Assembly: GCA_002269645.1 (NCBI GenBank)
Contig: NIVC01001598.1
Span: 1-64,000 of the forward strand
Direction: 5' to 3'
DNA from: Macrostomum lignano
Lineage: Eukaryota
DNA length: 64,000 nt
Part shown: positions 25,662 to 51,640 of the stretch, in pieces
Numbering within the stretch: the stretch's first letter is position 1
Layout: every line of letters begins with the position of its first letter
Made by a program: the position numbers and the translations under genes
Notes under the pieces: generated by a model
The model's input: only the letters and a program-made list of their open reading frames with translations
Database searches by the model: none
Told to the model about the DNA's origin: nothing

Positions 25662-28600
25662 ATGTCACTAATTGATGAAGCTGTGCCTACGGTTGATGAG
25701 GCTCCATCAGCAGCAGTCCTGCAGCAGCAGCTGGACAGGCAGGAGGCTGAGTTCAGTGAGCAGCGCGCAACAATGAAGGAGCTCTACTTGCAGAAGGAGG
25801 CGAAAATCCGTCAGCTGGAGGATGAGCTCGCCGATCTGAAAACTGCCGCCAAGCTCAAGGAGGAGGAGCTGGACTTTGTGCAGCAGAATTATAAGTGAGA
25901 GTCACCAGCTGATGTTAGAGTTAGAGCTGATGTTTGAGCTGATGGTAGAGTCCCTTCATCACCCATTGCAGGCAGGAGGTAGAGTCCCTTCATCACCCAT
26001 TGCAGGCAAGAGGTAGAGTCCCTTCATCCCTTCATCACCCATTGCAGGCAGGAGGTAAAGTCCCTTCATCACCCATTGCAGACAGGAGGTACCGGTAGAG
26101 TCCCTTCATCACCCATTGCAGACAGCAGGTAGAGTCCCTTCATCACCCATTGCAAGCAAGAGGTAGAGTCACTTCATCACCCATTGCAGACAGCAGGTAG
26201 AGTCCCTTCATCACCCATTGCAGACAGGAGGTACCGGTAGAGTCCCTTCATCACCCATTGCAGACAGGAGGTACCGGTAGAGTCACTTCATCACCCATTG
26301 CAAGCAAGAGGTAGAGTCCCTTCATCACCCATTGCAAGCAAGAGTTAGAGTCACTTCATCACCCATTGCAGACAGCAGGTAGAGTCCCTTCATCACCCAT
26401 TGCAGGCAAGAGGTAGAGTCCCTTCATCCCCCATTGCAAGCAAGAGGTAGAGTCCCTTCATCACCCATTGCAGACAGGAGGTAGAGTCCCTTCATCCCCC
26501 ATTGCAAGCAAGAGGTAGAGTCCCTTCATCACCCATTGCAGGCAGGAGGTAGAGTCCCTTCATCACCCATTGCAGACAGGAGGTAGAGTCCCTTCATCAC
26601 CCATTGCAAGCAAGAGGTAGAGTCCCTTCATCACCCATTGCAAGCAAGAGGTAGAGTCACTTCATCACCCATTGCAGACAGCAGGTAGAGTCCCTTCATC
26701 ACCCATTGCAGGCAAGAGGTAGAGTCCCTTCATCACCCATTGCAAGCAAGAGGTAGAGTCCCTTCATCACCCATTGCAAGCAAGAGGTAGAGTCCCTTCA
26801 TCACCCATTGCAGACAGGAGGTAGAGTCCCTTCATCACCCATTGCAAGCAAGAGGTAGAGTCCCTTCATCACCCATTGCAGACAGGAGGTAGAGTCCCTT
26901 CATCACCCATTGCAAGCAAGAGGTAGAGTCCCTTCATCACCCATTGCAGACAGGAGGTAGAGTCCCTTCATCACCCATTGCAGACAGGAGGTAGAGTCCC
27001 TTCATCACCCATTGCAGACAGGAGGTAGAGTCCCTTCATCCCTTCATCACCCATTGCAAGCAAGAGGTAGAGTCCCTTCATCACCCATTGCAAGCAAGAG
27101 GTAGAGTCCCTTCATCACCCATTGCAGGCAGGAGGTAGAGTCCCTTCATCACCCATTGCAGTCAGGAGGTAGAGTCCCTTCATCACCCATTGCAGACAGG
27201 AGGTAGAGTCCCTTCATCACCCATTGCAGGCAGGAGGTAGAGTCCCTGCACCACATCATTCGCGAGTCGGTTCGCGAGGCGGTAAGCGACGCCCAGGCCA
27301 AATTGGCGCACGAGTCGCAACTGTGGCAGCAGGAGAGGCTGGAAATGAGGCGTCAGATTGACGAGCTGCAGGCGGCCGCCGCAGCGGCCAGTTCGTCTTT
27401 CGCATCGGCCGCTGCTAGCACAGAGGAAGATGACAGCTTTCTGCACTCTATATCCAAGTCTTTGTCCAAGTCTGTGTCCAACAATAGCAAAGCGGCTGGA
27501 CATAAAGGCGGGCCGACCGCGGCACACGACGAGGTCGAGGCCAGCAATGAGGATTTGGAGGAGGCCATGGTCAGGGCGAAGCGGGACGTTGAAGTGCTCA
27601 AGTCCATTGTGGCTCCCTACCAGGTTTGGCAAATGCTTTTGCTTGCTGTACTTGTTTGTGGGGCAGAATAGCAATCATTGTTTATCAATTGTCTAATAGG
27701 CAGGACTAGCAATCCATCAATCTCATGAGCTAGACTAGCAATCCATCAATTCTCATGGGCTAGACTAGCAATCCATCAATTCTGATGAGCTAGACTAGCA
27801 ATCCATCAATTCTCATGAGCTAGACTAGCAATCCATCAATCTCATGAGCTATACTAGCAATCCATCAATTCTCATGAGCTAGACTAGCAATCCATCAATT
27901 CTCATGAGCTAGACTAGCAATCCATCAATTCTGATGAACTAGACTAGCAATCCATCAATTCTGATGAACTAGACTAGCAATCCATCAATTCTCATGAGCT
28001 TATTGAGCTAGACTAGCAATCCATCAATTCTCATGGGCTAGACTAGCAATCCATCAAATCTCATGAGCTAGATTAGCAATCCATCAATTCTGATGAGCTA
28101 GATTAGCAATCCATGAATTCTCATGGGCTAGACTAGCAATCCATCAATTCTCATGAGCTAGACTAGCAATCCATCAATCTCATGAGCTAGACTAGCAATC
28201 CATCAATTCTGATGAGCTAGATTAGCAATCCATGAATTCTCATGGGCTAGACTAGCAATCCATCAATTCTCATGAGCTAGACTAGCAATCCATCAATCTC
28301 ATGAGCTAGACTAGCAATCCATCAATTCTCATGAGCTAGACTAGCAATCCATCAATCTCATGAGCTAGACTAGCAATCCATTAATCTCATGAGCTAGACT
28401 AGCAATCCATCAATTCTCATGGGCTAGACTAGCAATCCACCAATTCTCATGAGCTAGACTTGCAATCCATCAATTCTGATGAGCTAGACTAGCAATCCAT
28501 CAATTCTCATGAGCTTATTGAGCTAGACTAGCAATCCATCAATTCTGATGAACTAGACTAGCAATCCATCAATTCTCATGAGCTTATTGAGCTAGACTAG

Positions 28601-31600
28601 CAATCCATCAATTCTCATGGGCTAGACTAGCAATCCATCAAATCTCATGAGCTAGATTAGCAATCCATCAATTCTGATGAGCTAGATTAGCAATCCATGA
28701 ATTCTCATGGGCTAGACTAGCAATCCATCAATTCTCATGAGCTAGACTAGCAATCCATCAATCTCATGAGCTAGACTAGCAATCCATCAATTCTCATGAG
28801 CTAGACTAGCAATCCATCAATCTCATGAGCTAGACTAGCAATCCATTAATCTCATGAGCTAGACTAGCAATCCATCAATTCTCATGGGCTAGACTAGCAA
28901 TCCACCAATTCTCATGAGCTAGACTTGCAATCCATCAATTCTCATGAGCTAGACTAGCAATCTATCAATTCTCATCAGCTAGACTAGCAATCCATCAATT
29001 CTCATGAGCTAGACTAGCAATCCATCAATCTCATGAGCTAGACTAGCAATCCATCAATTCTCATGAGCTAGACTAGCAATCCATCAATTCTCATGGGCTA
29101 GACTAGCAATCCACCAATTCTCATGAGCTAGACTAGCAATCCATCAATTCTGATGAGCTAGACTAGCAATCCATCAATTCTCATGAGCTAGACTAGCAAT
29201 CTATCAATTCTCATCAGCTAGACTAGCAATCCATCAATTCTCATGAGCTAGACTAGCAATCCATCAATTAGTACTCACAATCCGCAATCCCCAGGAGGAG
29301 GTCGCCTCGTTGAAGTCGCGCCTCCGCGAGGCCGAGGAGCGCCGGGACCGGGACGCGGCGGCTTGGGAGCAGCGCAGGCTGGTGCAGCAGCAGCAGCTCG
29401 AGCTGGAGCGGCGAAACACGGAAGCATTGAAGCTGTCGCTCAATCGGCTCAACGAACAGTACCTCGGGCAGCAGAGGCGGCTGTCTAGCGAGAATAGGCA
29501 CCTGGTTGGCCTCCTGGACGATGACCAGAAGCAGGTGCGCTAAGCTTCAAAATCCTTGATCCCTACAAGCCAAATCCCCAAAGATCCCAGATCCCCATAC
29601 GACAAATCCCCCCAAATCCCAGATCCCTAGAAGCCAAATCTCCCAAAATCCCAGATCCCTAGAAGCCAAATCTCCCAAAATCCCAGATCCCGACAAGTCA
29701 AATCCCCAAAAACCCCAGATCCCTGTAAGCCAAATGCCAAAAATCTCAAATCCCTATTGCCAAATCCCCAAAAATCCCAGATCCCAGATTCCCCCAAAAC
29801 CCCAGATCCATACAAGTCAAATGCCAAAAATCTCAAATCCCTACTACCAAATCCCCAAAAATCTCAAATCCCTACTGCCAAATCCCCAAAAATCCCAGAT
29901 CCCTACAAGCCGGTCTCCAATTCCCAAATTCCGCTTGACTTGAGCCCGCTTACCACTGCAGGCCCTCGCCGACTTCCGCACGCGCAAGAGCGGCGGCTCT
30001 GCCGGCGCTGAAAATTCTCACGCGGATTCTGACGGTGCCGCCGCCTCCGCGACGACGACTTCCGAGCACCAATCGACGCAATCTTCGTCACACGCTGTGG
30101 AGGACGGCGCTTTGGCGGCCTCCTCGCCGTTGCGAGACGCCCCGCCGGCCGACTCCAAGTCCGCCGTCCTTCGCCGGTCAGTCTCCGGTGGCCAGCTGTG
30201 CGAAGCGTCGGGTGCAGCAGCGGCTGCGGCACCTTCGACTGGCCTGGCGGAGACCGGGACAGCCTCGGCCGATACGCGGTCGCTTGCCAACTTGAGCATC
30301 TGCAGCGAAAGCGTCTCGGGGGCTGGTCGGATTGTTTCGGAACAGGTAGGGACTTGCTTGTCTCTGGAGTCGTCTGGACAGGGTTAGATGGATTGCTAGT
30401 CTGTGCTGTGGGATTTGAATGGGATTGCTATTCTGTGCTGTGGGATTTGAATGGGATTGCTAGTCTGTGCTGTGGGATTTGAATGGGATTGCTAGTCTGT
30501 GCTGTGTGGGATTTGAATGGGATTGCTAGTCTGTGCTGTGGGATTTGAATGGGATTGCTAGTCTGTTCCGTGGGATTTGAATGGGATTGCTAGTCTGTGC
30601 CGTGGGATTTGAATGGGATTGCTAGTCTGTGCTGTGTGGGATTTGAATGGGATTGCTAGTCTGTTCCGTGGGATTTGAATGGGATTGCTAGTCTGTGCTG
30701 TAGGATTTGAATGGGATTGCTAGTCTGTGCTGTGTGATTTGAATGGGATTGCTAGTCTGTGCCTTGGGATTTGAATGGGATTACTAGTCTATGCTGTGGG
30801 GATTTGAGTGGATTAAAATTTATTCAAGATAAACGCACATGCTTTATCCAGAGCAAAGATAAAGCTGCTAAGGTTAAGAAAGCGGCCCAGCTATCTAATA
30901 GCAGCGTTGCTAAGGTAATTAATTGCTCAGTAGGTAATATTTCAACGTAAAATATTTCAGGTTTGTATGCCTTTGAGTAGATTTTTATTCTGTATGATAT
31001 TTGCAAAGCCGTAGAGATGACTTTGATTTTACTTTATTTTTAATTTACTGATTTTCGATATACATAGTTGAATCTGAAGCCAAGTCTAAGATTGAAGACA
31101 CTAATTTGTAAAAAATTGTTTTTTAATTTCTTCATTTTTGACTTGTATCTTGATTGAATTTCTGATCCAGGACACAGTCCCAGCAATGACCCCAACCACA
31201 GTCCCAGCAATGACCCAAACCACAGTCCCAGCAATGACCCCAACTACAGTCTCAGCAATGACCCAAACCGCAGTCCCAGCAATGACCCCAACTACAGTCT
31301 CAGCAATGACCCAAACCGCAGTCCCAGCAATGACCCAAACTGCAGTCCCAGCAATGACCCCAACTACAGTCTCAGCAATGACCCAAACTGCAGTCCCAGC
31401 AATGACCTCAACTACAGTCTCAGCAATGACCCAAACCGCAGTCCAAAGAATGACCCAAACTGCAGTCCCAGCAATGATCCAAACCACAGTCCTAAAAAAG
31501 ACCCAAACCGCAGTCCCAGCAACGACCTAAACCACAGTCCCAGCAATGACCCAAACCACAGTCCCAGCAATGACCCCAACCGCAGTCCCAGCAATGACCC

Positions 31601-32795
31601 AAACCACAGTCCCAGCAATGACCCAAACCACAGTCCCAGCAATGACCCCGACCGCAGTCCCAGCAAAGCTGATCTGAAGCCCCAAAGCAGTGGCAGCTCC
31701 CCGTCCCGGTCCCGCAGGAGTGGTCCAACCTGCAGCTGGAGATCGACAAGGCCCGCCGCAAGGCCAGCGCCGGCTGCGAGCTCTGCCGCAACTACGAGGC
31801 GCAGCTGCAAACAGCGCAGGCCGCCCAGCGCGAGCGCGCCGAGGAAGCCACAAGATTGTCGACGGCGCTGCGCGCCGAAACCGCGCGCGCAGCCGAGCTC
31901 AGCGCCGGACTGGCCGACGCAGAGGCTCGAGCCGGCGAGGCCGCCGAGCGCTGGCGTGAGCAGGCCGACGAGTTCGCGCGCCAAACGGACGAGCTGCGCG
32001 CCTGTCTGGACCAGCTGGAGTCCCAGCGACTGTCCGAGTTTAGGGCCGAGGTTCGAGCCGAATTGGCGCGCCTGTTGGAGGACCGGACGGCGCTGCAATC
32101 GGAGCTGCAGCAGCTGGAGCGCTGGTGAGCTCAGGCCGGCTGCAGCTACATGCGTTAGTCAGCTGTGCTCAACCATTGCAGCTACATGCATTAGTCAGCT
32201 GTGCTCAACCATTGCAGCTACATGCATTAGTCAGCTGTGCTCAACCATTGCAGCTACATGCATTAGTCAGCTGTGCTCAACCATTGCAGCTACATGCATT
32301 AGTCAGCTGTGCTCAACCATTGCAGCTAAATGCATTAGTCAGCTGTGCTCAACCATTGCAGCTAAATGCATTAGTCAGCTGTGCTCAACCATTGCAGCTA
32401 AATGCATTAGTCAGCTGTGCTCAACCATTGCAGCTACATGCGTTAGTCAGCTGTGCTCAACCATTGCAGCTACATGCGTTAGTCAGCTGTGCTCAACCAT
32501 ACTGCTCTTAATGAACCACCCCAGGTACAATCACCTGCTGGAGTCTCGCGACGGTCGCACCGCCCAGCAGATGCGGGACGAGCTCATCGACCTGCCTGAC
32601 AATCTGGACGACGCCCAGGTGCTGGCGCTGCAGCTGCGCGAGGACCTCATCACGGCCAGGGCCAACCTTGAGCACGTCAGGCAGCGCGGCCGCGACCAGC
32701 TGGCCTTCGCCAAGCAGCAGCTGGAGGAGGAGGTCGCGATGAGGCGCCAGCTGCAGGTGTGAAGCTTTACGTGTCTGTCTGTCTGTCTGTCTGCC

Positions 32796-32848
<53 letters not shown>

Positions 32849-32882
32849 TGTCTGTCTGACTGTCTGTCTGTCTGTGTCTGAC

Positions 32883-32917
<35 letters not shown>

Positions 32918-32950
32918 GTGTCTGACTGTCTGTCTGTCTGTGTGTCTGAC

Positions 32951-32995
<45 letters not shown>

Positions 32996-33014
32996 TTCTG
33001 TCTGTCTGTCTGCC

Positions 33015-33098
<84 letters not shown>

Positions 33099-33690
33099 AC
33101 CGCAGCGGTGCCGCCCGCAGGCGCAGCTGCAGTCGGAGTCAGACCGGCTGAAGTCAGTCCAGTCGGAGTTGCAGGCAGCCGCGGCCAGCCGTCACAAGCT
33201 CGAAGACCGGCTGCAGCGCCAGCGGGAGGAGGCCGCCGAGGCGGAGGCGGCTCTGCGCTCAGCAGAGGCGGAGCTGAAGGCCCGCCTTGGCCGAAGCGAG
33301 TGCGAAGCGGCGGAGCTGAAGAACCGGGCGGCCTTCCTGCAGGTGGAGCTGCAGAACGCCATGAGCGTGCAGAAGGACTTTGTCGAGCTGTCGCAGTCTC
33401 TGCAGGTTCAGCTGGAGGGTCTCCGCCAGCAGGACACGGCCGAGGTCCGCTGGCAGTTCCCCGAGGACGCCGCCGCCTGCCACTCGTGCCAGCGGAAGTT
33501 CGCCGCCTCAGCCAAGCCGCGCCGCTGCCTGCACTGCGTGCGGCTCTTCTGCCAGGCCTGCACCGACAAGACCGTGCCCGCTGGGCCCTGCCGGCGGCCC
33601 GCCAACGTCTGCAGCGTCTGCCACACCATGCTAGTGAAGGACGCGGCGCCTTACTTCAGCGACAAGGCGCCTTCGCTGACTCAGCAATGA
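25662..33690 (+). CDS. RABEP1: Rabaptin-5 (Rab GTPase-binding effector 1) homologue with C-terminal FYVE-like zinc finger; exons 25662-25894, 27230-27623, 29295-29534, 29962-30345, 31718-32124, 32525-32756, 33121-33690 (819 aa)
   Basis: Rabaptin signatures EFSEQRATMKELYLQKE, VLKSIVAPYQEEVASLKSRLREAE, IVSEQEWSNLQ, CELCRNYEAQLQ, SVQKDFVELSQSLQVQLE, followed by an 8-Cys FYVE-type finger. GT-AG introns with phases 2,0,0,0,2,0; total 2460 nt. Confidence 0.92.
25943..27247. repeat. 34-bp minisatellite GGTAGAGTCCCTTCATCACCCATTGCAG(A/G)CAGGA, ~38 copies; the last copy spans the intron1/exon2 junction
   Basis: Visible periodicity; the final copy reads cag|G CAG GAG GTA GAG TCC CTG (K-QEVESL). Confidence 0.97.
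27703..29268. repeat. 30-bp minisatellite CTAGACTAGCAATCCATCAATTCTCATGAG, ~52 copies, rabaptin intron 2
   Basis: Visible periodicity; variant blocks recur. Confidence 0.97.
29545..29930. repeat. Degenerate AAATCCC/GATCCC low-complexity repeat, rabaptin intron 3
   Basis: Recurrent AAATCCCAGATCCC motifs. Confidence 0.85.
30385..30812. repeat. 32-bp minisatellite GGGATTTGAATGGGATTGCTAGTCTGTGCTGT, ~13 copies, rabaptin intron 4
   Basis: Visible periodicity. Confidence 0.95.
31171..31665. repeat. 24-bp minisatellite CACAGTCCCAGCAATGACCCAAAC, ~20 copies, rabaptin intron 4
   Basis: Visible periodicity. Confidence 0.95.
32140..32500. repeat. 36-bp minisatellite CATTGCAGCTACATGCATTAGTCAGCTGTGCTCAAC, ~10 copies, rabaptin intron 5
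   Basis: Visible periodicity. Confidence 0.96.
32771..33095. repeat. (GTCT)n microsatellite filling rabaptin intron 6
   Basis: Direct observation. Confidence 0.98.
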
Positions 33691-33714
33691 ACAGCTGGAC
33701 AGGAGAGCGGAGCG

Positions 33715-33985
33715 GATCGGGGATTTGGGATCTATGAACTTGGGAATTTAAGATTTGGGATCTGCGATTGGGGATCTCAGATTTGGGATCTGTGATTGGG
33801 GATCTCAGATTTGGGATCTGTGATTGGAGAACTCAGATTTGGGATCTGTGATTGGGGATCTCAGATTTGGGATCTGTGCTTGGAGAACTCAGATTTGGGA
33901 TCTGTGATTGGAGAACTCAGATTTGGGATCTGTAATTGGAGAACTCAGATTTGGGATCTGTGATTAAGGTCTCAGATTTGGGGTG
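33715..33985. repeat. 28-bp tandem repeat CTCAGATTTGGGATCTGTGATTGGGGAT just 3' of the rabaptin stop
   Basis: About 9 copies. Confidence 0.93.
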
Positions 33986-34369
33986 CACGGTAGAGATTCG
34001 CGATGAGGACCTAAGATTTGAGTGTACTGGTTGAGGATCTTGTCGAATTTGGGATCAGAAACGGATCCTAAGGGATTTTAAGTTGTACGCTCGTACGTGC
34101 AGATCTCTCGATCGTCCCTTGCTCCCTGAGTTCATAATGCGAAACCTCCGCCTCGTTCTCCAAAGACACCCGTCTTTTGGCCTTGTCGCATTTGCCGATG
34201 AAAGAGCCCGTAATTTGACCGTGCCAGTTTCCTGATCTTGCGTATTCTTACCTTATATTAGCATGCTTCATGAGAAATATTAACCATTTTTATTCCACTA
34301 AGGTGCGCTGCTGCCTGCTGAGCCTGCTCCCTATTCTTTCTCCTGGGCTTGGGGTTCGATTCACATGAC

Positions 34370-34562
34370 ATGCATTAGTTATGTATACATTATGTATGCA
34401 TGACATATGTATTAGTATGTATACATTATGTATACTTGACATATGTATTAGTATAATACATTATGCAAACATGATATGTATCAGTATGTATACATTATGC
34501 ATACATCACATACATGTATGTATTAGTATACATACATTATGTATACTTGACATATGTATTAG
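34370..34562. repeat. Degenerate ~36-bp ATGTATACATTATG...CATATGTATTAGT repeat
   Basis: About 5 imperfect copies. Confidence 0.8.
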
Positions 34563-36188
34563 TCGCTTGATTACCACGGTTTCATTACATGATTCACCCT
34601 ATCGGATGCCGGCTTTCCTACATGTGCTGAATGCGTTGTTAATGTAGTCGGATTTATTGCTGTGATTAGCCAAAATCAGTTTATTGATGAATATTCCTCC
34701 TGTCTGTATGTTTAGTCTGATGGTTCCTTAATGCATTGTTTTTTATTCATAAGTGGCTCTGCTGTAAGCCGTAACGCTTTGGTGAGACGAATAAATGTAA
34801 TATTTTTGCCATTCATAAATATTCTTGAACTATTCACTTATTGCTAAACTAAAACAGATTGATGCTGAAGTCTTGGATTGGTTATTTTTGGCCCATCAAT
34901 TATGGGATTATTGAGAGCAGTTGGTGCAGTAGCTGAATAGCACTTAAAATGGATACTTTCAAAACCAGTCACCAGACTTATTTGTCCTCAAAAATAAAAA
35001 ATTCACAAAACTTGTGAGCTTAGGAAACCAGTTTTACAATATCGGGCTCCAGAAAATTAATAATGAGTTCATGTATATTATTCACAGAGTCAAAGATAAA
35101 GATAGGAGAGCCAATGTTAGACTAAGGATTTTGATTGATAATGAAGAAAACAGCATTTTCAACAACATATATAATTATGCACAGCATGAAGCAAATTGAA
35201 TAATGAAAACTTACAACTTAAACAAGAGAAATGAATCTAATGAGCACTATTTAAAGTATTAAAATCGTCATTCAATTTAATAAGCAATTATGGCAAAATT
35301 ATAAGATGACTCATTTTATACAATAAGATTTAGGAATTTTTTTGCTGTTAGACTACACAATCACACATAATACTAAAATGCATACTAAGAAACCAGATTA
35401 TATAGATTAAACAAAAGATTTTTGAGGCACCAGGCACAAACATACTTATTTAACAGCAAAAAATGAAAATTATATTTCATTTATTAAATACCATTTATAC
35501 TGGTAGAAACACTTAAATAAATCAAGGCAGAAAATGAAGAAATGTAAAAATGTACTTAAATTTCTAGTTTTTTTTATAAGCAGATTTTATTGTTAAGAAT
35601 TACAGTTCTAAAAATTGGCAAAGTTGGAGACAAAATTTAACATAAATTGTATTTAAACAGAGAAAACGGTATTATTGTTAATTAATTTAAATTATTCTTA
35701 ATATTTTCTTGATGTGAAAACTCTGAAGGCTCCAATTGAGTAGTATCAAAAATTATAATTAAATAACAAAGATGATGAATTAGATTATTTTTAATGGCTT
35801 TAGTGATCTCAAGCTGCCTATCTGGGCAATTAAATTGTAGCCCAGAAATATACATTAATTAAAAATACAAAAGTCCATTTATATTCACTTGTATTTGACT
35901 ATATATTTATAGAGCAATGTTATTACAAAACTTAGATACTAGATATGATATATTTCATGCTTAGCTATTTAATCACAATGTAAAACCAATACTGCAATAG
36001 TGTAAAACTGTATATCAGTACTATAAATCAAGTAGGCCTATTAACTATATAAAATATAGAAGTATTCTATGATACTTAAAGTTAAAAATCAAGTGTCAAT
36101 TTTATAGGCCTAATTGAACTAGCTATTGAGACTAAGTTTATTTAGGACTGGATACTGAGTGAATCAACTTGGACTAACTTAAAGAAAG

Positions 36189-37103
36189 CTAAAAAGAAGG
36201 CTTATTGGATCCTGCTGGCACTGCTGCTGCTTCTGGTGCTGGTGCTGCTGGAATAGGCAGCTTATTGAGTCTGCAATAGGCTTCAATTGTATACTCGATG
36301 ATCTTCTCAATAAACTCCAATTGACCAGTCTCTTTGAACCGCTTCAAAAACTGTGGATCAAACTGCAGCAACATTGCTTTGTTGTCCGGCTCCTGGCCTT
36401 TGAACTTTTTCTCCAATTCCATGGCTGCCATGTCATACAGAGCCTCCACAATAAAGCGCCAATACATTGGCTTGTTACCCCAGTGCTCTGGGTGGTGTTC
36501 GTTGTGGCAATAGTGATGGTGCAGGCCAGTCTCCCAGGCGTCATCGTCACACTTGCTCCCATCGAAGCAGGGATACCATTTCATGGCGTAGGTGACAGTC
36601 TCTACAAAGCTGTACTTGCTGTCATCATGCACATCGATCTGCTCCTCAGTGGCATCTTGCTCTGGGCGGTACTCGGAGAGTAGGCGGCCTTCTTGGTGTA
36701 GTCTGGGCTTTACTGCAGAGATGACTAATTCATTAAAGACTACGAAGCCCCTTTTAACGTAGCTTTTGTGCCGATTGACGTACGAATAGTAAGTCTCCAC
36801 GTTCAGGTTCTTCCAAATCAGCTTTGTAGGCGGACTTTCAGTTAGAAGCGCTGATCGCTGTTCATCACTTCTCAGCTGCCTTAATTCACTCAGCCGTGCA
36901 GTCACATCTTGTTTCAACTTACAAGGCCAGACGAACAACAAGATACGCATTATCGTATGGTAGGGCTTGTGCTTGGACTTAATCTTCAGAATATCCAGTA
37001 ATTCTACATCTGTCTGGTCAACAGTGGCAATAAACGGCTCCGCAAAGATCTCGCTTTGTTTGGAGTAGCCTGCTATAATCAGACCTTCAGTCTGTTTAGA
37101 CAT
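36189..37103 (-). CDS. Intronless HD-like metal-dependent hydrolase, DUF5662-type (304 aa)
   Basis: Uninterrupted 915-nt ORF with YVNRHKSYV, HDDSKYSFVE, AWETGLHHHYCHNEHHPEHW, VEALYDMAA: the H...HD.SK...HH..N.HH.E.W...E...D pattern recalled for DUF5662 (not searched). GC-richer than its AT-rich flanks. Confidence 0.78.
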   Translation of the reverse strand: MSKQTEGLIIAGYSKQSEIFAEPFIATVDQTDVELLDILKIKSKHKPYHTIMRILLFVWPCKLKQDVTARLSELRQLRSDEQRSALLTESPPTKLIWKNLNVETYYSYVNRHKSYVKRGFVVFNELVISAVKPRLHQEGRLLSEYRPEQDATEEQIDVHDDSKYSFVETVTYAMKWYPCFDGSKCDDDAWETGLHHHYCHNEHHPEHWGNKPMYWRFIVEALYDMAAMELEKKFKGQEPDNKAMLLQFDPQFLKRFKETGQLEFIEKIIEYTIEAYCRLNKLPIPAAPAPEAAAVPAGSNKPSF

Positions 37104-38557
37104 GGATAACAATTAATACTCAACACTCCAAATAACACTTAGTAATTGTATATTCGTAATTAAAAGATACAAGCTCCATTTCCTAAGACCTTAGTAGCCA
37201 AGGCAACAAACAACTGCTATCGATTAAGCCAGTCAAGCTGCTGGCCATACCGAGAAAACTCCATGGGAATTCCGTGGGCAATCCAAATAGCTATAGCGGG
37301 CTGTGCGTACACTTGCCACTATGTACGTTTAACCCCCAAACCATTCTGTTTTTCAAGTTTCCAATAGTATAGCAGCCCTATCCCACCTCACAACCCCAGC
37401 CAAAGTCAAAGAGCAGCATTACATAGCATTAACGCTCAAGTGTACACAAGGAATGGAAAGTAGCTTGTTTCTCTTGCCTTCTGTTCTCAGTAGTTTTTTA
37501 TGGTCACAGATAAGGGGAAGGCAGAGCTTGCTGCCTCTGTCTTTTTATTCAGACATTTTAGAGGTAGCTCTGGCTTGACGCTTTAACCGTTTGTATTGTG
37601 CATATGCTCTATACATCAACTTGGAAATAAGCAATTTAGTATGCTTCTGCTTCCACAAGTCACATTAAAACACTAGCCATCAAAGGCAGCGCGAGCTGCA
37701 GAATTCCAGGCGAAGACAGACTGAAATGCAACACAATAGCGTATATGCAATTGTAAATTCAAACTGTGAATTTATAATTTCTATTGTGTAGCTTGTAGTT
37801 GTAGATGCATTTTTTCTGCTACTAAATGCACATCATATATTGCATTGCTGCTAACTTCATGTATGCGCACTGACAAAAGCAGCTTCTTAGTCGAGCATCT
37901 ACATGTATACATGTACGGTCCTCCTTGCCCTGGCCGGCAATTCCAGGGAAAGCTCACTTGAGGCGGGGTTTAAACTAGCAATGTACACGTTCAGACGTGC
38001 ACTCTTGTACTTCGGCCTTTCTCTCTCTACATGTACGCATGGGCAACTGCGACCCTGAAAATTGGTGCGAAATTTGTTTAATTAGCGTGTAATAATCTGT
38101 CTGCAACAAAGTCACTGCTGTATTAAATTATATGAAAGCGGAGATTTAATAATAAGGCAAGTCAGTTACAATCCAGTTGGATTAAATCAGTTCGTAACGA
38201 AGCCATGCACAATGCCAGGTGTGGCAGTTGCTTGTTTGGCAGCTTTTGAAAGCCTTTTCAATATTCTTGCACGGAAGAATTACTATAGTGTAGTATAGAG
38301 CACAATTATAAATAATATTCGAAACTTGTGTACAAAATAAGTGGATATAAATCGATAGCAAGTTAAATATACACAAATACTAAATCGAAGTCTACCGCGA
38401 GACTGTTTAATTTGAGTCAAAGCATAATTTATAAATAAGCAATTCCATGCAATGTCAGTTAGTATGCGTTAGCAATAGCATTGCTATATACTGCATCTCA
38501 TTAGCCTAAGCTGATACATAATACCGAAATTAGGGTCGAATTTAAGAAACGGTCTAA

Positions 38558-39524
38558 GGGTGATTCTCACACCATAGGGGCGATTCTCACAGATGGCATA
38601 GGGGCGATTCTCACACATGGCATAGGGGCGATTCTCACAGATGGCATAGGGGCGATTCTCACACATGGCATAGGGGCGATTCTCAGATGGCATAGGGGCG
38701 ATTCTCACAGATGGCATAGGGGCGATTCTCACACATGGCATAGGGGCGATTCTCACAGATGGCATAGGGGCGATTCTCACACATGGCATAGGGGCGATTC
38801 TCACAGATGGCATAGGGGCGATTCTCACACATGGCATAGGGGCGATTCTCACAGATGGCATAGAGGCGATTCTCACAGATGGCATAGGGGCGATTCTAAC
38901 AGATGGCATAGGGGCGATTCTCACAGATGGCATAGGGGCGATTCTCACAGATGGCATAGGGGCGACTCACAGATGGCATAGGGGCGACTCACAGATGGCA
39001 TAGGGGCGATTCTCACAGATGGCATAGGGGCGATTCTCACAGATGGCATAGGGGCGATTCTCACAGATGGCATAGTGGCGATTCTCACAGATGGCATAGG
39101 GGCGATTCTCACAGATGGCATAGGGGCGATTCTCACACATGGCATAGGGGCGATTCTCACAGATGGCATAGGGGCGATTCTCACAGATGGCATAGGGGCG
39201 ATTCTCACAGATGGCATAGGGGCGACTCACAGATGGCATAGGGGCGACTCACAGATGGCATAGGGGCGATTCTCACAGATGGCATAGGGGCGATTCTCAC
39301 AGATGGCATAGGGGCGATTCTCACAGATGGCATAGTGGCGATTCTCACAGATGGCATAGGGGCGATTCTCACACATGGCATAGGGGCGATTCTCACACAT
39401 GGCATAGGGGCGATTCTCACAGATGGCATAGGGGCGATTCTCACAGATGGCATAGGGGCGATTCTCACAGATGGCATAGGGGCGATTCTCACAGATGGTA
39501 TAGGGGCGTCTGTGAGAATGACCC
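38558..39524. repeat. 24-bp satellite GGCATAGGGGCGATTCTCACAGAT (~39 copies) bounded by 14-bp inverted termini (MITE-like)
   Basis: Left GGGTGATTCTCACA (38558-38571), right TGTGAGAATGACCC (39511-39524), one mismatch. Confidence 0.9.
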
Positions 39525-39697
39525 GAGGGGAAAGGGCGATTCTCAGGAATGACCCGAGGGGCAAGGGCGATTCTCAGGAATGACCCGAGGGGCAAGGGCG
39601 ATTCTCAGGAATGACCCGAGGGGCAAGGGCGATTCTCAGGAATGACCCGAGGGGCAAGGGCGATTCTCAGGAATGACCCGAGGGGCAAGGGCGACTC
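39515..39697. repeat. 31-bp tandem repeat GAATGACCCGAGGGGCAAGGGCGATTCTCAG, ~6 copies
   Basis: Abuts the 24-bp array and shares the GGGCGATTCTCA core. Confidence 0.93.
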
Positions 39698-40149
39698 AGC
39701 TACAGGCCAAGTGAACTGCATCCAAGCAGATTGAACAAACGACAATTCAGTTAAGGAGACTCAAAGCTGATGAATGAAAATTGGCAAAATGTGGTAAGAA
39801 AACTCAGCAGCAGGTTGAACAAAACTGACCCAACTTGAGAAAAATTTTGCTTTTGCAAAGAGGAAGACGGGACGCAAGCAGAGCAGAATGCAACTGGGAT
39901 TTTGAAAATAGAAGCGCTTTTAAAAGCTGGACAACAGCAAAGAATGAGCCAGATGGTGAACAGTGATGGTGAATACAGTGTGAAGTACACTACGATTGCC
40001 TGGAGCGGGCTAATAAAACTAATTACGAGAAGGCCAAACAGATGGTTAAGACGCAAGCTTTATGGACAAATTTCACATGTGGGACTGAAATTACTGCTTG
40101 ATAATTTTGAAAAACGAACCAGTGTGAATTTTAAGCTGAATATAAAGTG

Positions 40150-41207
40150 CATGATCTGGGTTCATGACTTGAGATCTAGACTTCATGATCTGGAATCTAG
40201 ACTTCATGATCTGGAATCTAGACTTCATGATCTGGAATCTAGACTTCATGATCTGGAATCTAGACTTCATGATCTGGAATCTAGAGTTCAGGATCTTGGA
40301 TTTAGAGTTCAGGATCTGGGATTCAAAGGGTTCAGGATCTGGGACTCAAAGGGTTCAGGATCTGGGATTCAAAGGGTTCAGGATCTGGAACTCAAAGGGT
40401 TCAGGATCTGGGACTCAAAGGGTTCAGGATCTGGGATTCAAAGGGTTCAGGATCTGGGACTCAAAGGGTTCAGGATCTGGAACTCAAAGGGTTCAGGATC
40501 TGGGACTCAAAGGGTTCAGGATCTGGGACTCAAAGGGTTTAGGATCTGGGACTCAAAGGGTTCAGGATCTGGGACTCAAAGGGTTCAGGATCTGGGACTC
40601 AAAGGGTTCAGGATCTGGGACTCAAAGGGTTCAGGATCTGGGACTCAAAGGGTTCAGGATCTGGGACTCAAAGGGTTCAGGATCTGGGACTCAAAGGGTT
40701 CAGGATCTGGGACTCAAAGGGTTCAGGATCAGGGATTTTAGGGGTTCAAGGTTCAACATTCTAGCACATCTGGGACTCAAAGGGTTCAGGATCTGGGACT
40801 CAAAGGGTTCAGGATCTGGGACTCAAAGGGTTCAGGATCTGGGACTCAAAGGGTTCAGGATCTGGGACTCAAAGGGTTCAGGATCTGGGACTCAAAGGGT
40901 TCAGGATCTGGGACTCAAAGGGTTCAGGATCTGGGACTCAAAGGGTTCAGGATCTGGGACTCAAAGGGTTCAGGATCTGGGACTCAAAGGGTTCAGGATC
41001 AGGGATTTTAGGGGTTCAAGGTTCAACATTCTAGCACATCTGGGACTCAAAGGGTTCAGGATCTGGGACTCAAAGGGTTCAGGATCTGGGACTCAAAGGG
41101 TTCAGGATCTGGGACTCAAAGGGTTCAGGATCTGGGACTCAAAGGGTTCAGGATCAGGGATTTTAGGGGTTCAAGGTTCAACATTCTAGCACATCTGGGA
41201 CTCAAAG
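40150..41207. repeat. Compound satellite: 21-bp CTTCATGATCTGGAATCTAGA, then 23-bp GGATCTGGGACTCAAAGGGTTCA with three recurrent ~48-bp interruptions
   Basis: Interruption GGATCAGGGATTTTAGGGGTTCAAGGTTCAACATTCTAGCACATCT at ~40726, ~40996, ~41152. Confidence 0.95.
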
Positions 41208-41848
41208 TCCGAGTATTGAGATCTAATAAGGATAGGATTTGAGTGAATTTTCGAAATCAGAAAAAATTTAACAGTTATATAAATAAAACTAGCAAAAACA
41301 TTAGCTTACTGTGTCACCGAAATATTCATTACACACGGGGTCTGAGCAGCGCTGGACACACAAGCTACAATATATAATACAGCGAGGCGTGTCTACAGAA
41401 AACAAAATAAAGCATTTTAGCCGTACATCCTCAAGAGTCTACGTTTAAAAACAATTGCAAGATAAAAAATTATATTTAGAAAAACAGATTGTATTCTGTT
41501 ATAAATTCTGCATACTTTCTGCTACTACAAGTAGTATACCCAAAGCGGCAAGTGAACACAGTAGGCAGTTTTTAGCACCCTCAGCTTTAATCAGGAAGCG
41601 AAGCGGCGAGAGTTGGGAAAGACGGGGGGCAGAGGCGGCAAACAGAGGGAGGCACCGGCCCCGGGTCCTCAGTCCGATGCTGGCAGATTCTCCAGCGAAT
41701 CGGATGGACCACAATAAATCAAAGAGGGCAAAACAATCAAAATACTGAACTAGCGTGAGATTCGCGACACTAAGCATCACTCAGGTAGGCCACTGAGCAG
41801 CTGCCAGCTTCCTTCATCAGGTGCTCGAACACTCCCACGAGATCCTCA

Positions 41849-42569
41849 GATTATTGGGAGATTCTTCACCAATGGTATTATCAGGCTATTGGGAGATTAT
41901 TCCTTAGTGGGATTATCTGGCTATTGAGAGATCATTCCCAAATGGGAATATCAGGCTATTGGGAGATTATTCCCTACTGGGATTAGCAGGCTATTGGGAG
42001 ATTCTTCCCAAATAGGATTATCTGGCTATTAAGAGAGTCTTCCCCAGTGGGATTATCGCGCTATTGGGAGATTCTTCCCAAATGGGATTATCAGGCTATT
42101 AAGATTCTTCCCAAATGGGATTATCAGGCTATTAGATTCTTCCCAAATGGGATTATTAGGCTATTGGGAGATTATTCCGAATGGGATTAACAGGTATTAT
42201 GATTCTTCCCAAATGGGATTATCAGGCTATTAGGATTCTTCCCAAATGGGATTACCAGGCTATTGGGAGATTATTCCCAAATGGGATTATCAAGATATTG
42301 GGGGATTTTTCCCCAGTGGGATTATCAGATTATTAAGATACAAAATCACGGGGAAGAATCTCCCAATAGCCTGATAGTCCAATCAGGGAAGAATCTCCCA
42401 ATAGCCTGATAATCCAACCAGGGAAGAATCTCCCAATAGCCTGATAGTCCAATCAGGGAAGAATCTCCCAATAGCCTGATAGTCCAATCAGGGAAGAATC
42501 TCCCAATAGCCTGATAGTCCAATCAGGGAAGAATCTCCCAATAGCCTGATAATCCAATTAGGGAAGAAT
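41849..42569. repeat. Fold-back structure: degenerate GGGATTATCAGGCTATTGGGAGATTCTTCCC array followed by its reverse complement (35-bp units)
   Basis: 41849-~42335 forward units; ~42350-42569 GGGAAGAATCTCCCAATAGCCTGATA(G/A)TCC inverted units. Confidence 0.9.
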
Positions 42570-42588
42570 GGATCCCGAGCACCGATCA

Positions 42589-51640
<9,052 letters not shown>

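Follow-up and report, generated by a model that had tools for sequence, protein, structure and literature searches.

An intact, intronless long-form DUF5662 gene in the flatworm Macrostomum lignano and its relatives in aquatic invertebrates and viruses

The HD phosphohydrolases, including YfbR, Dgt/SAMHD1 and the HD-GYP proteins, are all-alpha enzymes with the domain signature HDxGK and with metal ligands in the order H ... HD(xxK) ... H ... HH ... D. A second point of reference is provided by the viral accessory hydrolases, which occur as extra domains in RNA-virus polyproteins and as enzymes that degrade second messengers. Cyclic dinucleotides, which signal to STING, are one example of nucleotide immune messengers. 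The third point of reference is the catalogued DUF5662 family (Pfam PF18907), which is common in bacteria, archaea and large phages. We analyzed a 64,000-nt stretch of DNA from the flatworm Macrostomum lignano (positions 1 to 64,000 of contig NIVC01001598.1, assembly GCA_002269645.1; hereafter, the window), where a preliminary description had proposed that an intronless gene at 36189-37103 encodes a DUF5662/HD-like hydrolase acquired from bacteria, phage or virus. That description called DUF5662 uncharacterized, and a literature search found no paper naming DUF5662, PF18907 or Mlig027342. We find that the open reading frame (ORF) is a real, intact, intronless nuclear gene of M. lignano, and that it encodes a long form of DUF5662. 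We lean toward the reading that this long form is a lineage of aquatic eukaryotes and their viruses, made patchy by horizontal movement, that it reached Macrostomum in the same way, and that it acts as a metal-dependent hydrolase of nucleotide phosphoesters.

The ORF lies on the minus strand (36189-37103), begins with an ATG at 37103, ends with a stop codon at 36189-36191, and encodes 304 aa in one exon. An in-frame stop is found four codons upstream of the ATG. The ORF list, the Pfam match and an identical 304-aa protein called on the same contig (179,691 bp) together identify a complete single-exon coding sequence (CDS) for a long-form DUF5662 protein. DUF5662 is the sole Pfam domain (E = 3.8e-18; 66 bits against a cutoff of 27; residues 103-243), and scans of the protein with NCBIfam, PHROGs and PADLOC returned no match. 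A sequence scan located an AATAAA hexamer 49 nt 3′ of the stop codon (36137-36142, minus strand), a putative polyadenylation signal whose use is inferred. The CDS contains 47% GC, compared with 24.8% in the 1 kb downstream and 41.7% in the 1 kb upstream. Neighboring host exon ORF stretches contain 58-64% GC, and the lower content of the CDS is a weak compositional hint of foreign origin. The frame, its quoted motifs, the AT-rich flanks and the DUF5662 assignment were all part of the preliminary description, and each of them holds.

The gene is present once in the window and, among the proteins indexed, in three M. lignano copies; the other proteins in the same 90% identity cluster are PAA69304.1 (Mlig027342g1) and PAA87112.1 (Mlig027342g3). 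The three loci are collinear through the gene and its non-coding flanks, with 94-96% identity across the flanks and 97.1-97.6% across the CDS. A Rab5-bind/FYVE gene lies downstream at all three loci, and a PH-BTK-SH3-SH2-kinase gene lies upstream at two of the three, within the span fetched. The three copies are homeologues or haplotypes, and the gene was in place before they diverged by about 3-5%. Contamination or misassembly was rejected because three collinear copies, on three long contigs, share the same host-gene synteny.

To place the protein within its family, we searched 1.84 billion representative proteins exhaustively with HMMER and obtained 159 homologue clusters (E <= 1e-3). The best homologues reach E = 1e-55, and 4 of the 159, counting the flatworm query, lie below E = 1e-30. 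A word-indexed homologue search with a 24-sequence alignment returned only five proteins and added nothing. Alignment and domain mapping separate the family into two architectures: a short form of ~150-200 aa, consisting of the core only, and a long form of ~220-300 aa per domain, in which the core is joined to N- and C-terminal helical extensions. The long-form DUF5662 subfamily is a grouping defined in this analysis by an N-terminal extension with a conserved Trp and by a C-terminal FLxR[FY] motif. The flatworm protein belongs to it: W59, L253 and R255 are conserved, and the predicted local confidence (pLDDT) exceeds 86 across residues 21-285. Its match spans positions 3-250 of the long-form profile, as do the matches of the bivalve, crayfish and nimavirus proteins. 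For bacterial and phage proteins, the match to the same profile extends only from ~60-110 to ~175-200.

The anatomy of the flatworm protein follows from these comparisons, with all coordinates on the minus strand. Residues 1-20 (37044-37103) are poorly conserved, have no counterpart in relatives and are predicted to be disordered (pLDDT 47-63). Residues 21-100 (36804-37043) form the long-form N-terminal extension, which includes W59 and is predicted to be helical (pLDDT 86-98; helices 33-99). The preliminary description had noted this extension as unrecognized; it is present, and in the long form it is a conserved subdomain of helices, predicted with confidence. The DUF5662 core occupies residues 103-243 (36375-36797), as delimited by the Pfam match, the invariant alignment columns and the core model. 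Within it, sequence and conservation mark the HDDSK motif (residues 159-163; 36615-36629) and the His-rich motif HHHYCHNEHHPEHW (residues 195-208; 36480-36521), of which H197, Y198, N201 and H203-H204-P205 are conserved. R111-H112 and EALYD (220-224) are further motifs in the core. Residues 244-285 (36249-36374) make up the C-terminal extension, predicted to be helical (pLDDT 93-98), with the FLxRF/Y motif at L253 and R255. The Pro/Ala-rich, low-complexity tail (residues 286-304; 36192-36248; pLDDT 42-49) has no counterpart in relatives. It is lineage-specific and varies among the three M. lignano copies, one of which (P0005) has a different tail.

The conserved positions are shared across the family, and the extensions are not. 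W59 is invariant in the ten closest long-form sequences, and L253 and R255 are nearly invariant. In the 50-sequence long-form alignment, H112, H159, D160, K163, H197, H203, H204, P205 and D224 are invariant, and S162, Y172, W190, M213, E220 and M225 are nearly so. Across 123 mixed sequences, conservation in the equivalent columns is 90% or more, and the short forms conserve them too. The flatworm protein and the short forms (PF18907, phrog_20637) have in common the core and the series H, HDxSK, HHYxxNxHHPE and ExxxD, to which the flatworm protein adds, relative to the prokaryotic short forms, an N-terminal subdomain of ~80 residues, a C-terminal extension of ~40 residues and an insertion at 138-152. 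Neither the flatworm protein nor the scallop protein tested matches phrog_20637, unlike the short forms. The bivalve (Mizuhopecten yessoensis XP_021358625, Ylistrum balloti, Mytilus coruscus), crayfish and viral (majanivirus BDT62754.1) long forms share both extensions and the invariant residues with the flatworm protein, although the scallop protein is only ~24-33% identical to it. The scallop, crayfish and nimavirus proteins carry two tandem domains and the flatworm protein one; the scallop gene has introns and the flatworm gene has none.

Short forms are widespread among prokaryotes. A motif scan of one genome per prokaryotic species found at least 120 candidate loci from many bacterial and archaeal phyla; of the 120 listed, ~118 encode the DUF5662 core, none of them with the extensions. 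No neighboring Pfam family occurs in more than three of the 98 upstream or 103 downstream neighbors of the prokaryotic short-form genes. Short forms are also found in large phages and phage-like contigs, where they match phrog_20637 ('unknown function'). The phage carriers include Bacillus phages SP-15 and Eldridge and one Moorella phage, with the protein annotated as hypothetical every time. Jumbo-phage-like metagenomic contigs carry the short form as well, the same protein appearing on contigs of up to ~248 kb, and there the gene adjoins topoisomerase IV/gyrase A-like, HAD_SAK_2 and LysM genes.

Named long forms come from the bivalves Mizuhopecten yessoensis (two genes), Ylistrum balloti and Mytilus coruscus, from the crayfish Cherax quadricarinatus, and from Metapenaeus joyneri majanivirus. 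The gene of the scallop M. yessoensis spans 5.1 kb and is split into four or more coding exons. Those of the 159 homologue clusters for which names were retrieved include no vertebrate, insect, nematode or other flatworm. The patchy eukaryotic occurrence given in the preliminary description is borne out, with bivalves, crayfish and flatworm as the named eukaryotic hits.

We then built a neighbor-joining tree of 99 domains (197 columns, 100 bootstraps), most of whose tips carry no taxon label. The three M. lignano copies and five environmental sequences (P0002, P0010, P0011, P0003 and P0004) form a clade with 100% support, which branches beside the whole set of other long forms, including those of viruses, and apart from the bivalves. 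Long and short forms separate with 79% support, the crayfish and nimavirus domains group with 100% support, and the deep nodes receive 42-57%.

The five environmental relatives are 37-49% identical to the flatworm protein and lie on contigs of ~1 kb, each with a single ORF in AT-rich flanks and one with an AATAAA hexamer; two of the five derive from an ENA assembly and a Tara Oceans run. From their sequences, the contigs look eukaryote-like. The closest homologue (49% identity) lies on contig JAZBNS010001755.1 of a metagenome-assembled genome (MAG) labeled Kangiellaceae (GCA_036350755.1). Because (TA)n and (GA)n microsatellites immediately precede the ORF on this 1,160-bp contig, the label is probably a binning error that placed eukaryotic DNA in a bacterial genome. 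Pattern scans of prokaryotic genomes, IMG/VR and metagenomes for closer relatives found none: a protein-derived pattern had no relative in 185,579 GTDB species genomes, the metagenome collection gave distant core matches only, and tblastn of the flatworm protein against 50,697 phage records returned nothing.

Several long-form or long-form-like DUF5662 proteins come from viruses or virus-like elements. An 8,487-nt IMG/VR contig (IMGVR_UViG_3300021967_000253) encodes a 2,741-aa Picornavirales-type polyprotein (P0055) in which the domain order is RNA helicase, 3C protease, DUF5662, RNA-dependent RNA polymerase and capsid. Three shorter IMG/VR contigs (L012, L013 and L019), each consisting of one long read-through ORF, also carry DUF5662. 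Two Tara Oceans scaffolds (15,487 and 16,879 bp) carry a long-form gene among dense ORFs that are mostly unannotatable. This element is nearly identical in the two samples and contains a gene for an integrase with rve and chromo domains as well as an ORF of ~1,380 aa; its appearance is that of a mobile element, virus-like or Polinton-like, from a marine eukaryote. The majaniviruses, which are nimaviruses endogenous to penaeid shrimps, are described as carriers of multiple eukaryotic-like genes (PMC10871703). Both domains of the crayfish protein (P0178) group with the majanivirus protein (P0062) at 100% bootstrap support, and the crayfish 'host' gene may itself lie within endogenous nimaviral DNA.

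These contexts invite comparison with the viral accessory hydrolases (the ipomovirus HAM1/ITPase, the 2H phosphoesterases ns2 and VP3, and the poxins). The likeness is one of context only: a small, non-replicative, enzyme-like domain is found in a polyprotein and in large DNA viruses, and has host homologues too. No sequence or fold relationship between DUF5662 and these hydrolases was found.

DUF5662 also occurs fused to other domains. An 824-aa protein (P0049; Logan, 23-kb contig) joins DUF5662 to DHH and DHHA1 phosphoesterase domains, and a 655-aa protein (P0141) joins it to a weak nucleotidyltransferase match. PADLOC scans of nine other DUF5662 proteins gave weak matches only, all of them outside the DUF5662 part: DrmC (E = 0.0025) in P0139 and PDC-S09 in P0141. 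In the scallop, a gene with TIR and STING ligand-binding domains lies upstream of the two-domain DUF5662 gene (NEDP02003755.1, 1-294 and 10001-15126). This adjacency may be a coincidence, since genes of this kind are numerous in bivalves, or it may hint at function.

The potential metal ligands are invariant as a set within the core: H112, H159-D160, H197, H203-H204 and D224, with E220 nearly so. On an all-alpha scaffold, the series H ... HDxSK ... H ... HHPE ... E/D parallels the ligand order of di-metal HD enzymes, at the level of pattern only, and HDxSK resembles HDxGK. We modeled the protein with AlphaFold2 from family alignments, both at full length and as the core plus C-terminal extension. 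The full-length model is all-alpha (pLDDT 88.9, pTM 0.85) and poor only at residues 1-20 and in the Pro/Ala tail; the shorter model is better still (pLDDT 96.7, pTM 0.92). When both models were compared with 350,542 PDB chains, Foldseek reported no match at E <= 0.001 and listed no HD protein; the lowest E-value was 2.0 for the full-length model and 3.3 for the core, and no TM-score exceeded 0.27. Since Foldseek has reduced sensitivity to all-alpha folds, this negative lowers the claim of an HD fold without excluding it. Against the predicted viral structures of BFVD, Foldseek found one unnamed viral protein (probability 1.0, TM 0.48), which is probably a family member, and a weak match to a Hubei lepidoptera virus 4 protein.

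Sequence comparisons gave the same answer. Pfam searches relaxed to E <= 10 found no HD family in 102 DUF5662 members (50 long-form and 52 short-form). PDB sequence searches with the query, the long-form profile and the short-form profile returned His-tag artefacts or nothing, and no HD protein. In hhalign, the probabilities were 0.2% against E. coli YfbR and 1.5% against E. coli Dgt, a weak test with single-sequence templates. The ORFs of the collected loci yielded no further HD homologues from which an HD profile could be built. In the tests run, the flatworm protein therefore has no profile, sequence or fold similarity to the HD phosphohydrolases whose helical character and ligand order it shares; it may have a fold of its own or represent an HD domain that has diverged very far. 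Of the complete HD-type di-metal site first proposed for this gene, the motif pattern stands and the homology finds no support. The suggested dNTPase role in the manner of SAMHD1 is likewise unsupported, given the low hhalign score with Dgt, the lack of any PDB sequence or fold match and a Pfam assignment to DUF5662 only; the protein also has neither a SAM domain nor the allosteric region of the dNTPase type.

In the mechanism that we propose, the conserved His, Asp and Glu residues would bind one or two metal ions, and the protein would hydrolyze the phosphoester of a nucleotide-type substrate (a nucleotide, a short oligonucleotide or a nucleotide second messenger). In viruses, such an activity might control the nucleotide pool or remove host immune signals. 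In the animal, it might have a corresponding housekeeping or regulatory role. Bearing on function are the invariant His/Asp/Glu cluster in a compact helical domain, as predicted, the DHH/DHHA1 fusion, the repeated capture by unrelated viruses and the TIR-STING neighbor in the scallop. From the pattern of conserved residues, DUF5662 is likely to be a metalloenzyme of some kind. The narrower assignment, a nucleotide phosphoester hydrolase, is tentative and falls a little short of an even call. Because no characterized enzyme relative was found, the hydrolase mechanism rests on the residue pattern and on one domain fusion.

As to origin, the direct donor to the Macrostomum lineage would have been a virus or another eukaryote rather than a bacterium or phage, and the transfer would predate the divergence of the three M. 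lignano copies. Several results weigh against the combined reading of a horizontally moving long-form lineage with hydrolase activity. The deep nodes of the tree have the modest support given above, and the direction of transfer (virus to host or the reverse) is not readable from this neighbor-joining tree. Homology and fold tests link DUF5662 to no characterized enzyme, and the ~200 immediate neighbors at the ~118 prokaryotic loci listed share no recurrent family. Viral neighbor genes and element ends were looked for at the flatworm locus, and none was found. The ratio dN/dS among the three M. lignano copies is 0.78-1.18, and because it is based on only 4-9 synonymous differences, it is indistinguishable from neutral drift. 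Finally, the exact protein is absent from the indexed assemblies of SRA runs (Logan).

One alternative is vertical descent, in which long-form DUF5662 is an old protostome (or older) gene that was lost in most animals but retained by Macrostomum and by some bivalves and crustaceans, and in which the viral copies were captured from hosts. Two spiralian phyla and one crustacean have the gene, spliceosomal introns interrupt it in the scallop, majaniviruses are documented carriers of eukaryotic-like genes, and in all three M. lignano copies the gene has a stable position between host genes. The tree does not favor this account: the M. lignano clade does not join the bivalves, and its sister group comprises every other long form, viral or not. 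The crayfish protein, which supplies the crustacean record, is tied to the nimavirus at 100% and may represent endogenous viral DNA. The family is also rare (159 clusters in 1.84 billion proteins), the named homologues lack the animal groups listed above, and the M. lignano gene is intronless. Taken together, these results make vertical descent unlikely, though worth keeping in view beside the reading of horizontal movement.

A second alternative is that the gene is a decaying, non-functional relic, the unexpressed remnant of an insertion whose ORF is merely still open in young duplicates. The dN/dS values, the C-terminal tail that differs between copies, the lack of an exact protein match in the indexed SRA-run assemblies and the position of the gene among satellite arrays would all fit a relic. 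The dN/dS comparison is nearly powerless with so few synonymous differences, however, and the pattern of change differs from that of the surrounding DNA. The full-length frame is open in three of three copies, and every invariant family residue is kept in each. Gaps occupy 1-7 positions per about 915 nt of CDS, compared with 12-60 per 1,400 nt of flanks, which argues for selection on the reading frame; the identity of the CDS likewise exceeds that of the flanks, and the polyadenylation hexamer is correctly placed. We consider a relic quite improbable.

A more specific version of the hydrolase proposal can also be stated. Long-form DUF5662 would be an unrecognized class of metal-dependent phosphodiesterases, belonging to aquatic invertebrates and their RNA and DNA viruses, that removes nucleotide immune messengers; the flatworm would have domesticated a viral copy of the gene, and no solved structure would be related to the fold. 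The hints are the domains in the picorna-like polyprotein and in an endogenous nimavirus, the DHH/DHHA1 fusion and the scallop TIR-STING neighbor. At present we regard this proposal as a long shot.

The remaining alternative, a recent direct transfer from a bacterium or phage that delivered an HD-type phosphohydrolase acting like SAMHD1, draws on the prevalence of DUF5662 in bacteria, archaea and large phages, on the absence of introns, on the GC content of the CDS below that of neighboring host exons and on the Kangiellaceae label of the top named close match, but it is highly improbable: prokaryotic and phage forms, at the ~118 loci listed and in the phage matches, consist of the core alone, their matches and those from metagenomes are ~23-47% identical over core segments only, the flatworm extensions are common to the bivalve, crayfish and viral long forms, the closest relatives look eukaryote-like, the scans of 185,579 species genomes and 50,697 phage records found no relative, the 'Kangiellaceae' contig is a 1,160-bp fragment with (TA)n and (GA)n repeats, and the protein neither resembles Dgt-type dNTPases nor matches SAMHD1 or an HD protein in the PDB by sequence or fold. 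Of the three sources that the preliminary description had offered for a horizontal transfer, the virus has gained support; bacteria and phage, whose homologues lack the extensions shared by the bivalve, crayfish, nimavirus and environmental sequences, have not.

What is new here is a distinct eukaryotic and viral long form within a family that was already catalogued. Its fold is predicted with very high confidence, and Foldseek relates it to no solved structure. Hosts (flatworm, bivalves and crayfish) and unrelated viruses of aquatic organisms carry the long form, a distribution typical of genes traded in host-virus conflicts. If it is a nucleotide-directed hydrolase, it would be a new enzyme class for the biology of invertebrate antiviral defense or viral counter-defense. 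For Macrostomum, the locus offers a clear-cut case of a single-exon gene, probably acquired horizontally, that has become fixed between conserved host genes. At its present standing, the result is a useful annotation and a lead, rather than a demonstrated new system.

We now turn to the surroundings of the gene, which lies between two multi-exon genes, as first described. Downstream and convergent is the called Rab5-bind (Rabaptin-like)/FYVE gene (26189-33690, plus strand), with a Rab5-bind Pfam match in the ORF at 31956-32762; the part shown ends near 33690, ~2.5 kb from the DUF5662 stop codon. Upstream is the called PH-BTK-SH3-SH2-kinase gene of the Tec/BTK type (42586-47103 and extending past 47103, minus strand), identified by kinase and BTK-motif Pfam matches, with its 3′ end near 42586, ~5.5 kb from the DUF5662 ATG.

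The intergenic space is AT-rich and largely satellite DNA, as determined with Tandem Repeats Finder and a repeat search. Downstream of the DUF5662 gene, an array of 28-nt units occupies 33722-33982. Upstream, and outside the gene, satellite arrays fill most of the intergenic space (38573-42569), and their units measure 24 and 31 nt at 38573-39694, 21 and 23 nt at 40161-41160, and 35 nt at 41852-42569, the last in two blocks of inverted orientation. The arrays are mutually unrelated, and most of the long ORFs listed in the flanks are these repeats in translation. No pair of direct long terminal repeats (LTRs) or of terminal inverted repeats brackets the DUF5662 ORF within 33700-42600, which agrees with the earlier remark that no transposable element ends are nearby. 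With no bracketing repeats, and with flanking ORFs that are satellite translations, we rejected the idea that a transposable element or endogenous virus carries the DUF5662 ORF at this locus.

The nearest element is Ty3/gypsy-like and lies ~10 kb away, on the opposite strand, inside the span of the kinase gene. It is the coding region of a Ty3/gypsy-type LTR retrotransposon (46983-50167, plus strand). The integrase catalytic core (rve) was not detected in the two ORFs scanned, and no LTR search was made there. The domains present are a zinc-knuckle gag, an aspartyl protease, a reverse transcriptase, an RNase H and an integrase zinc-binding domain, and the gag-pol frame is broken into the two ORFs by one frame change.

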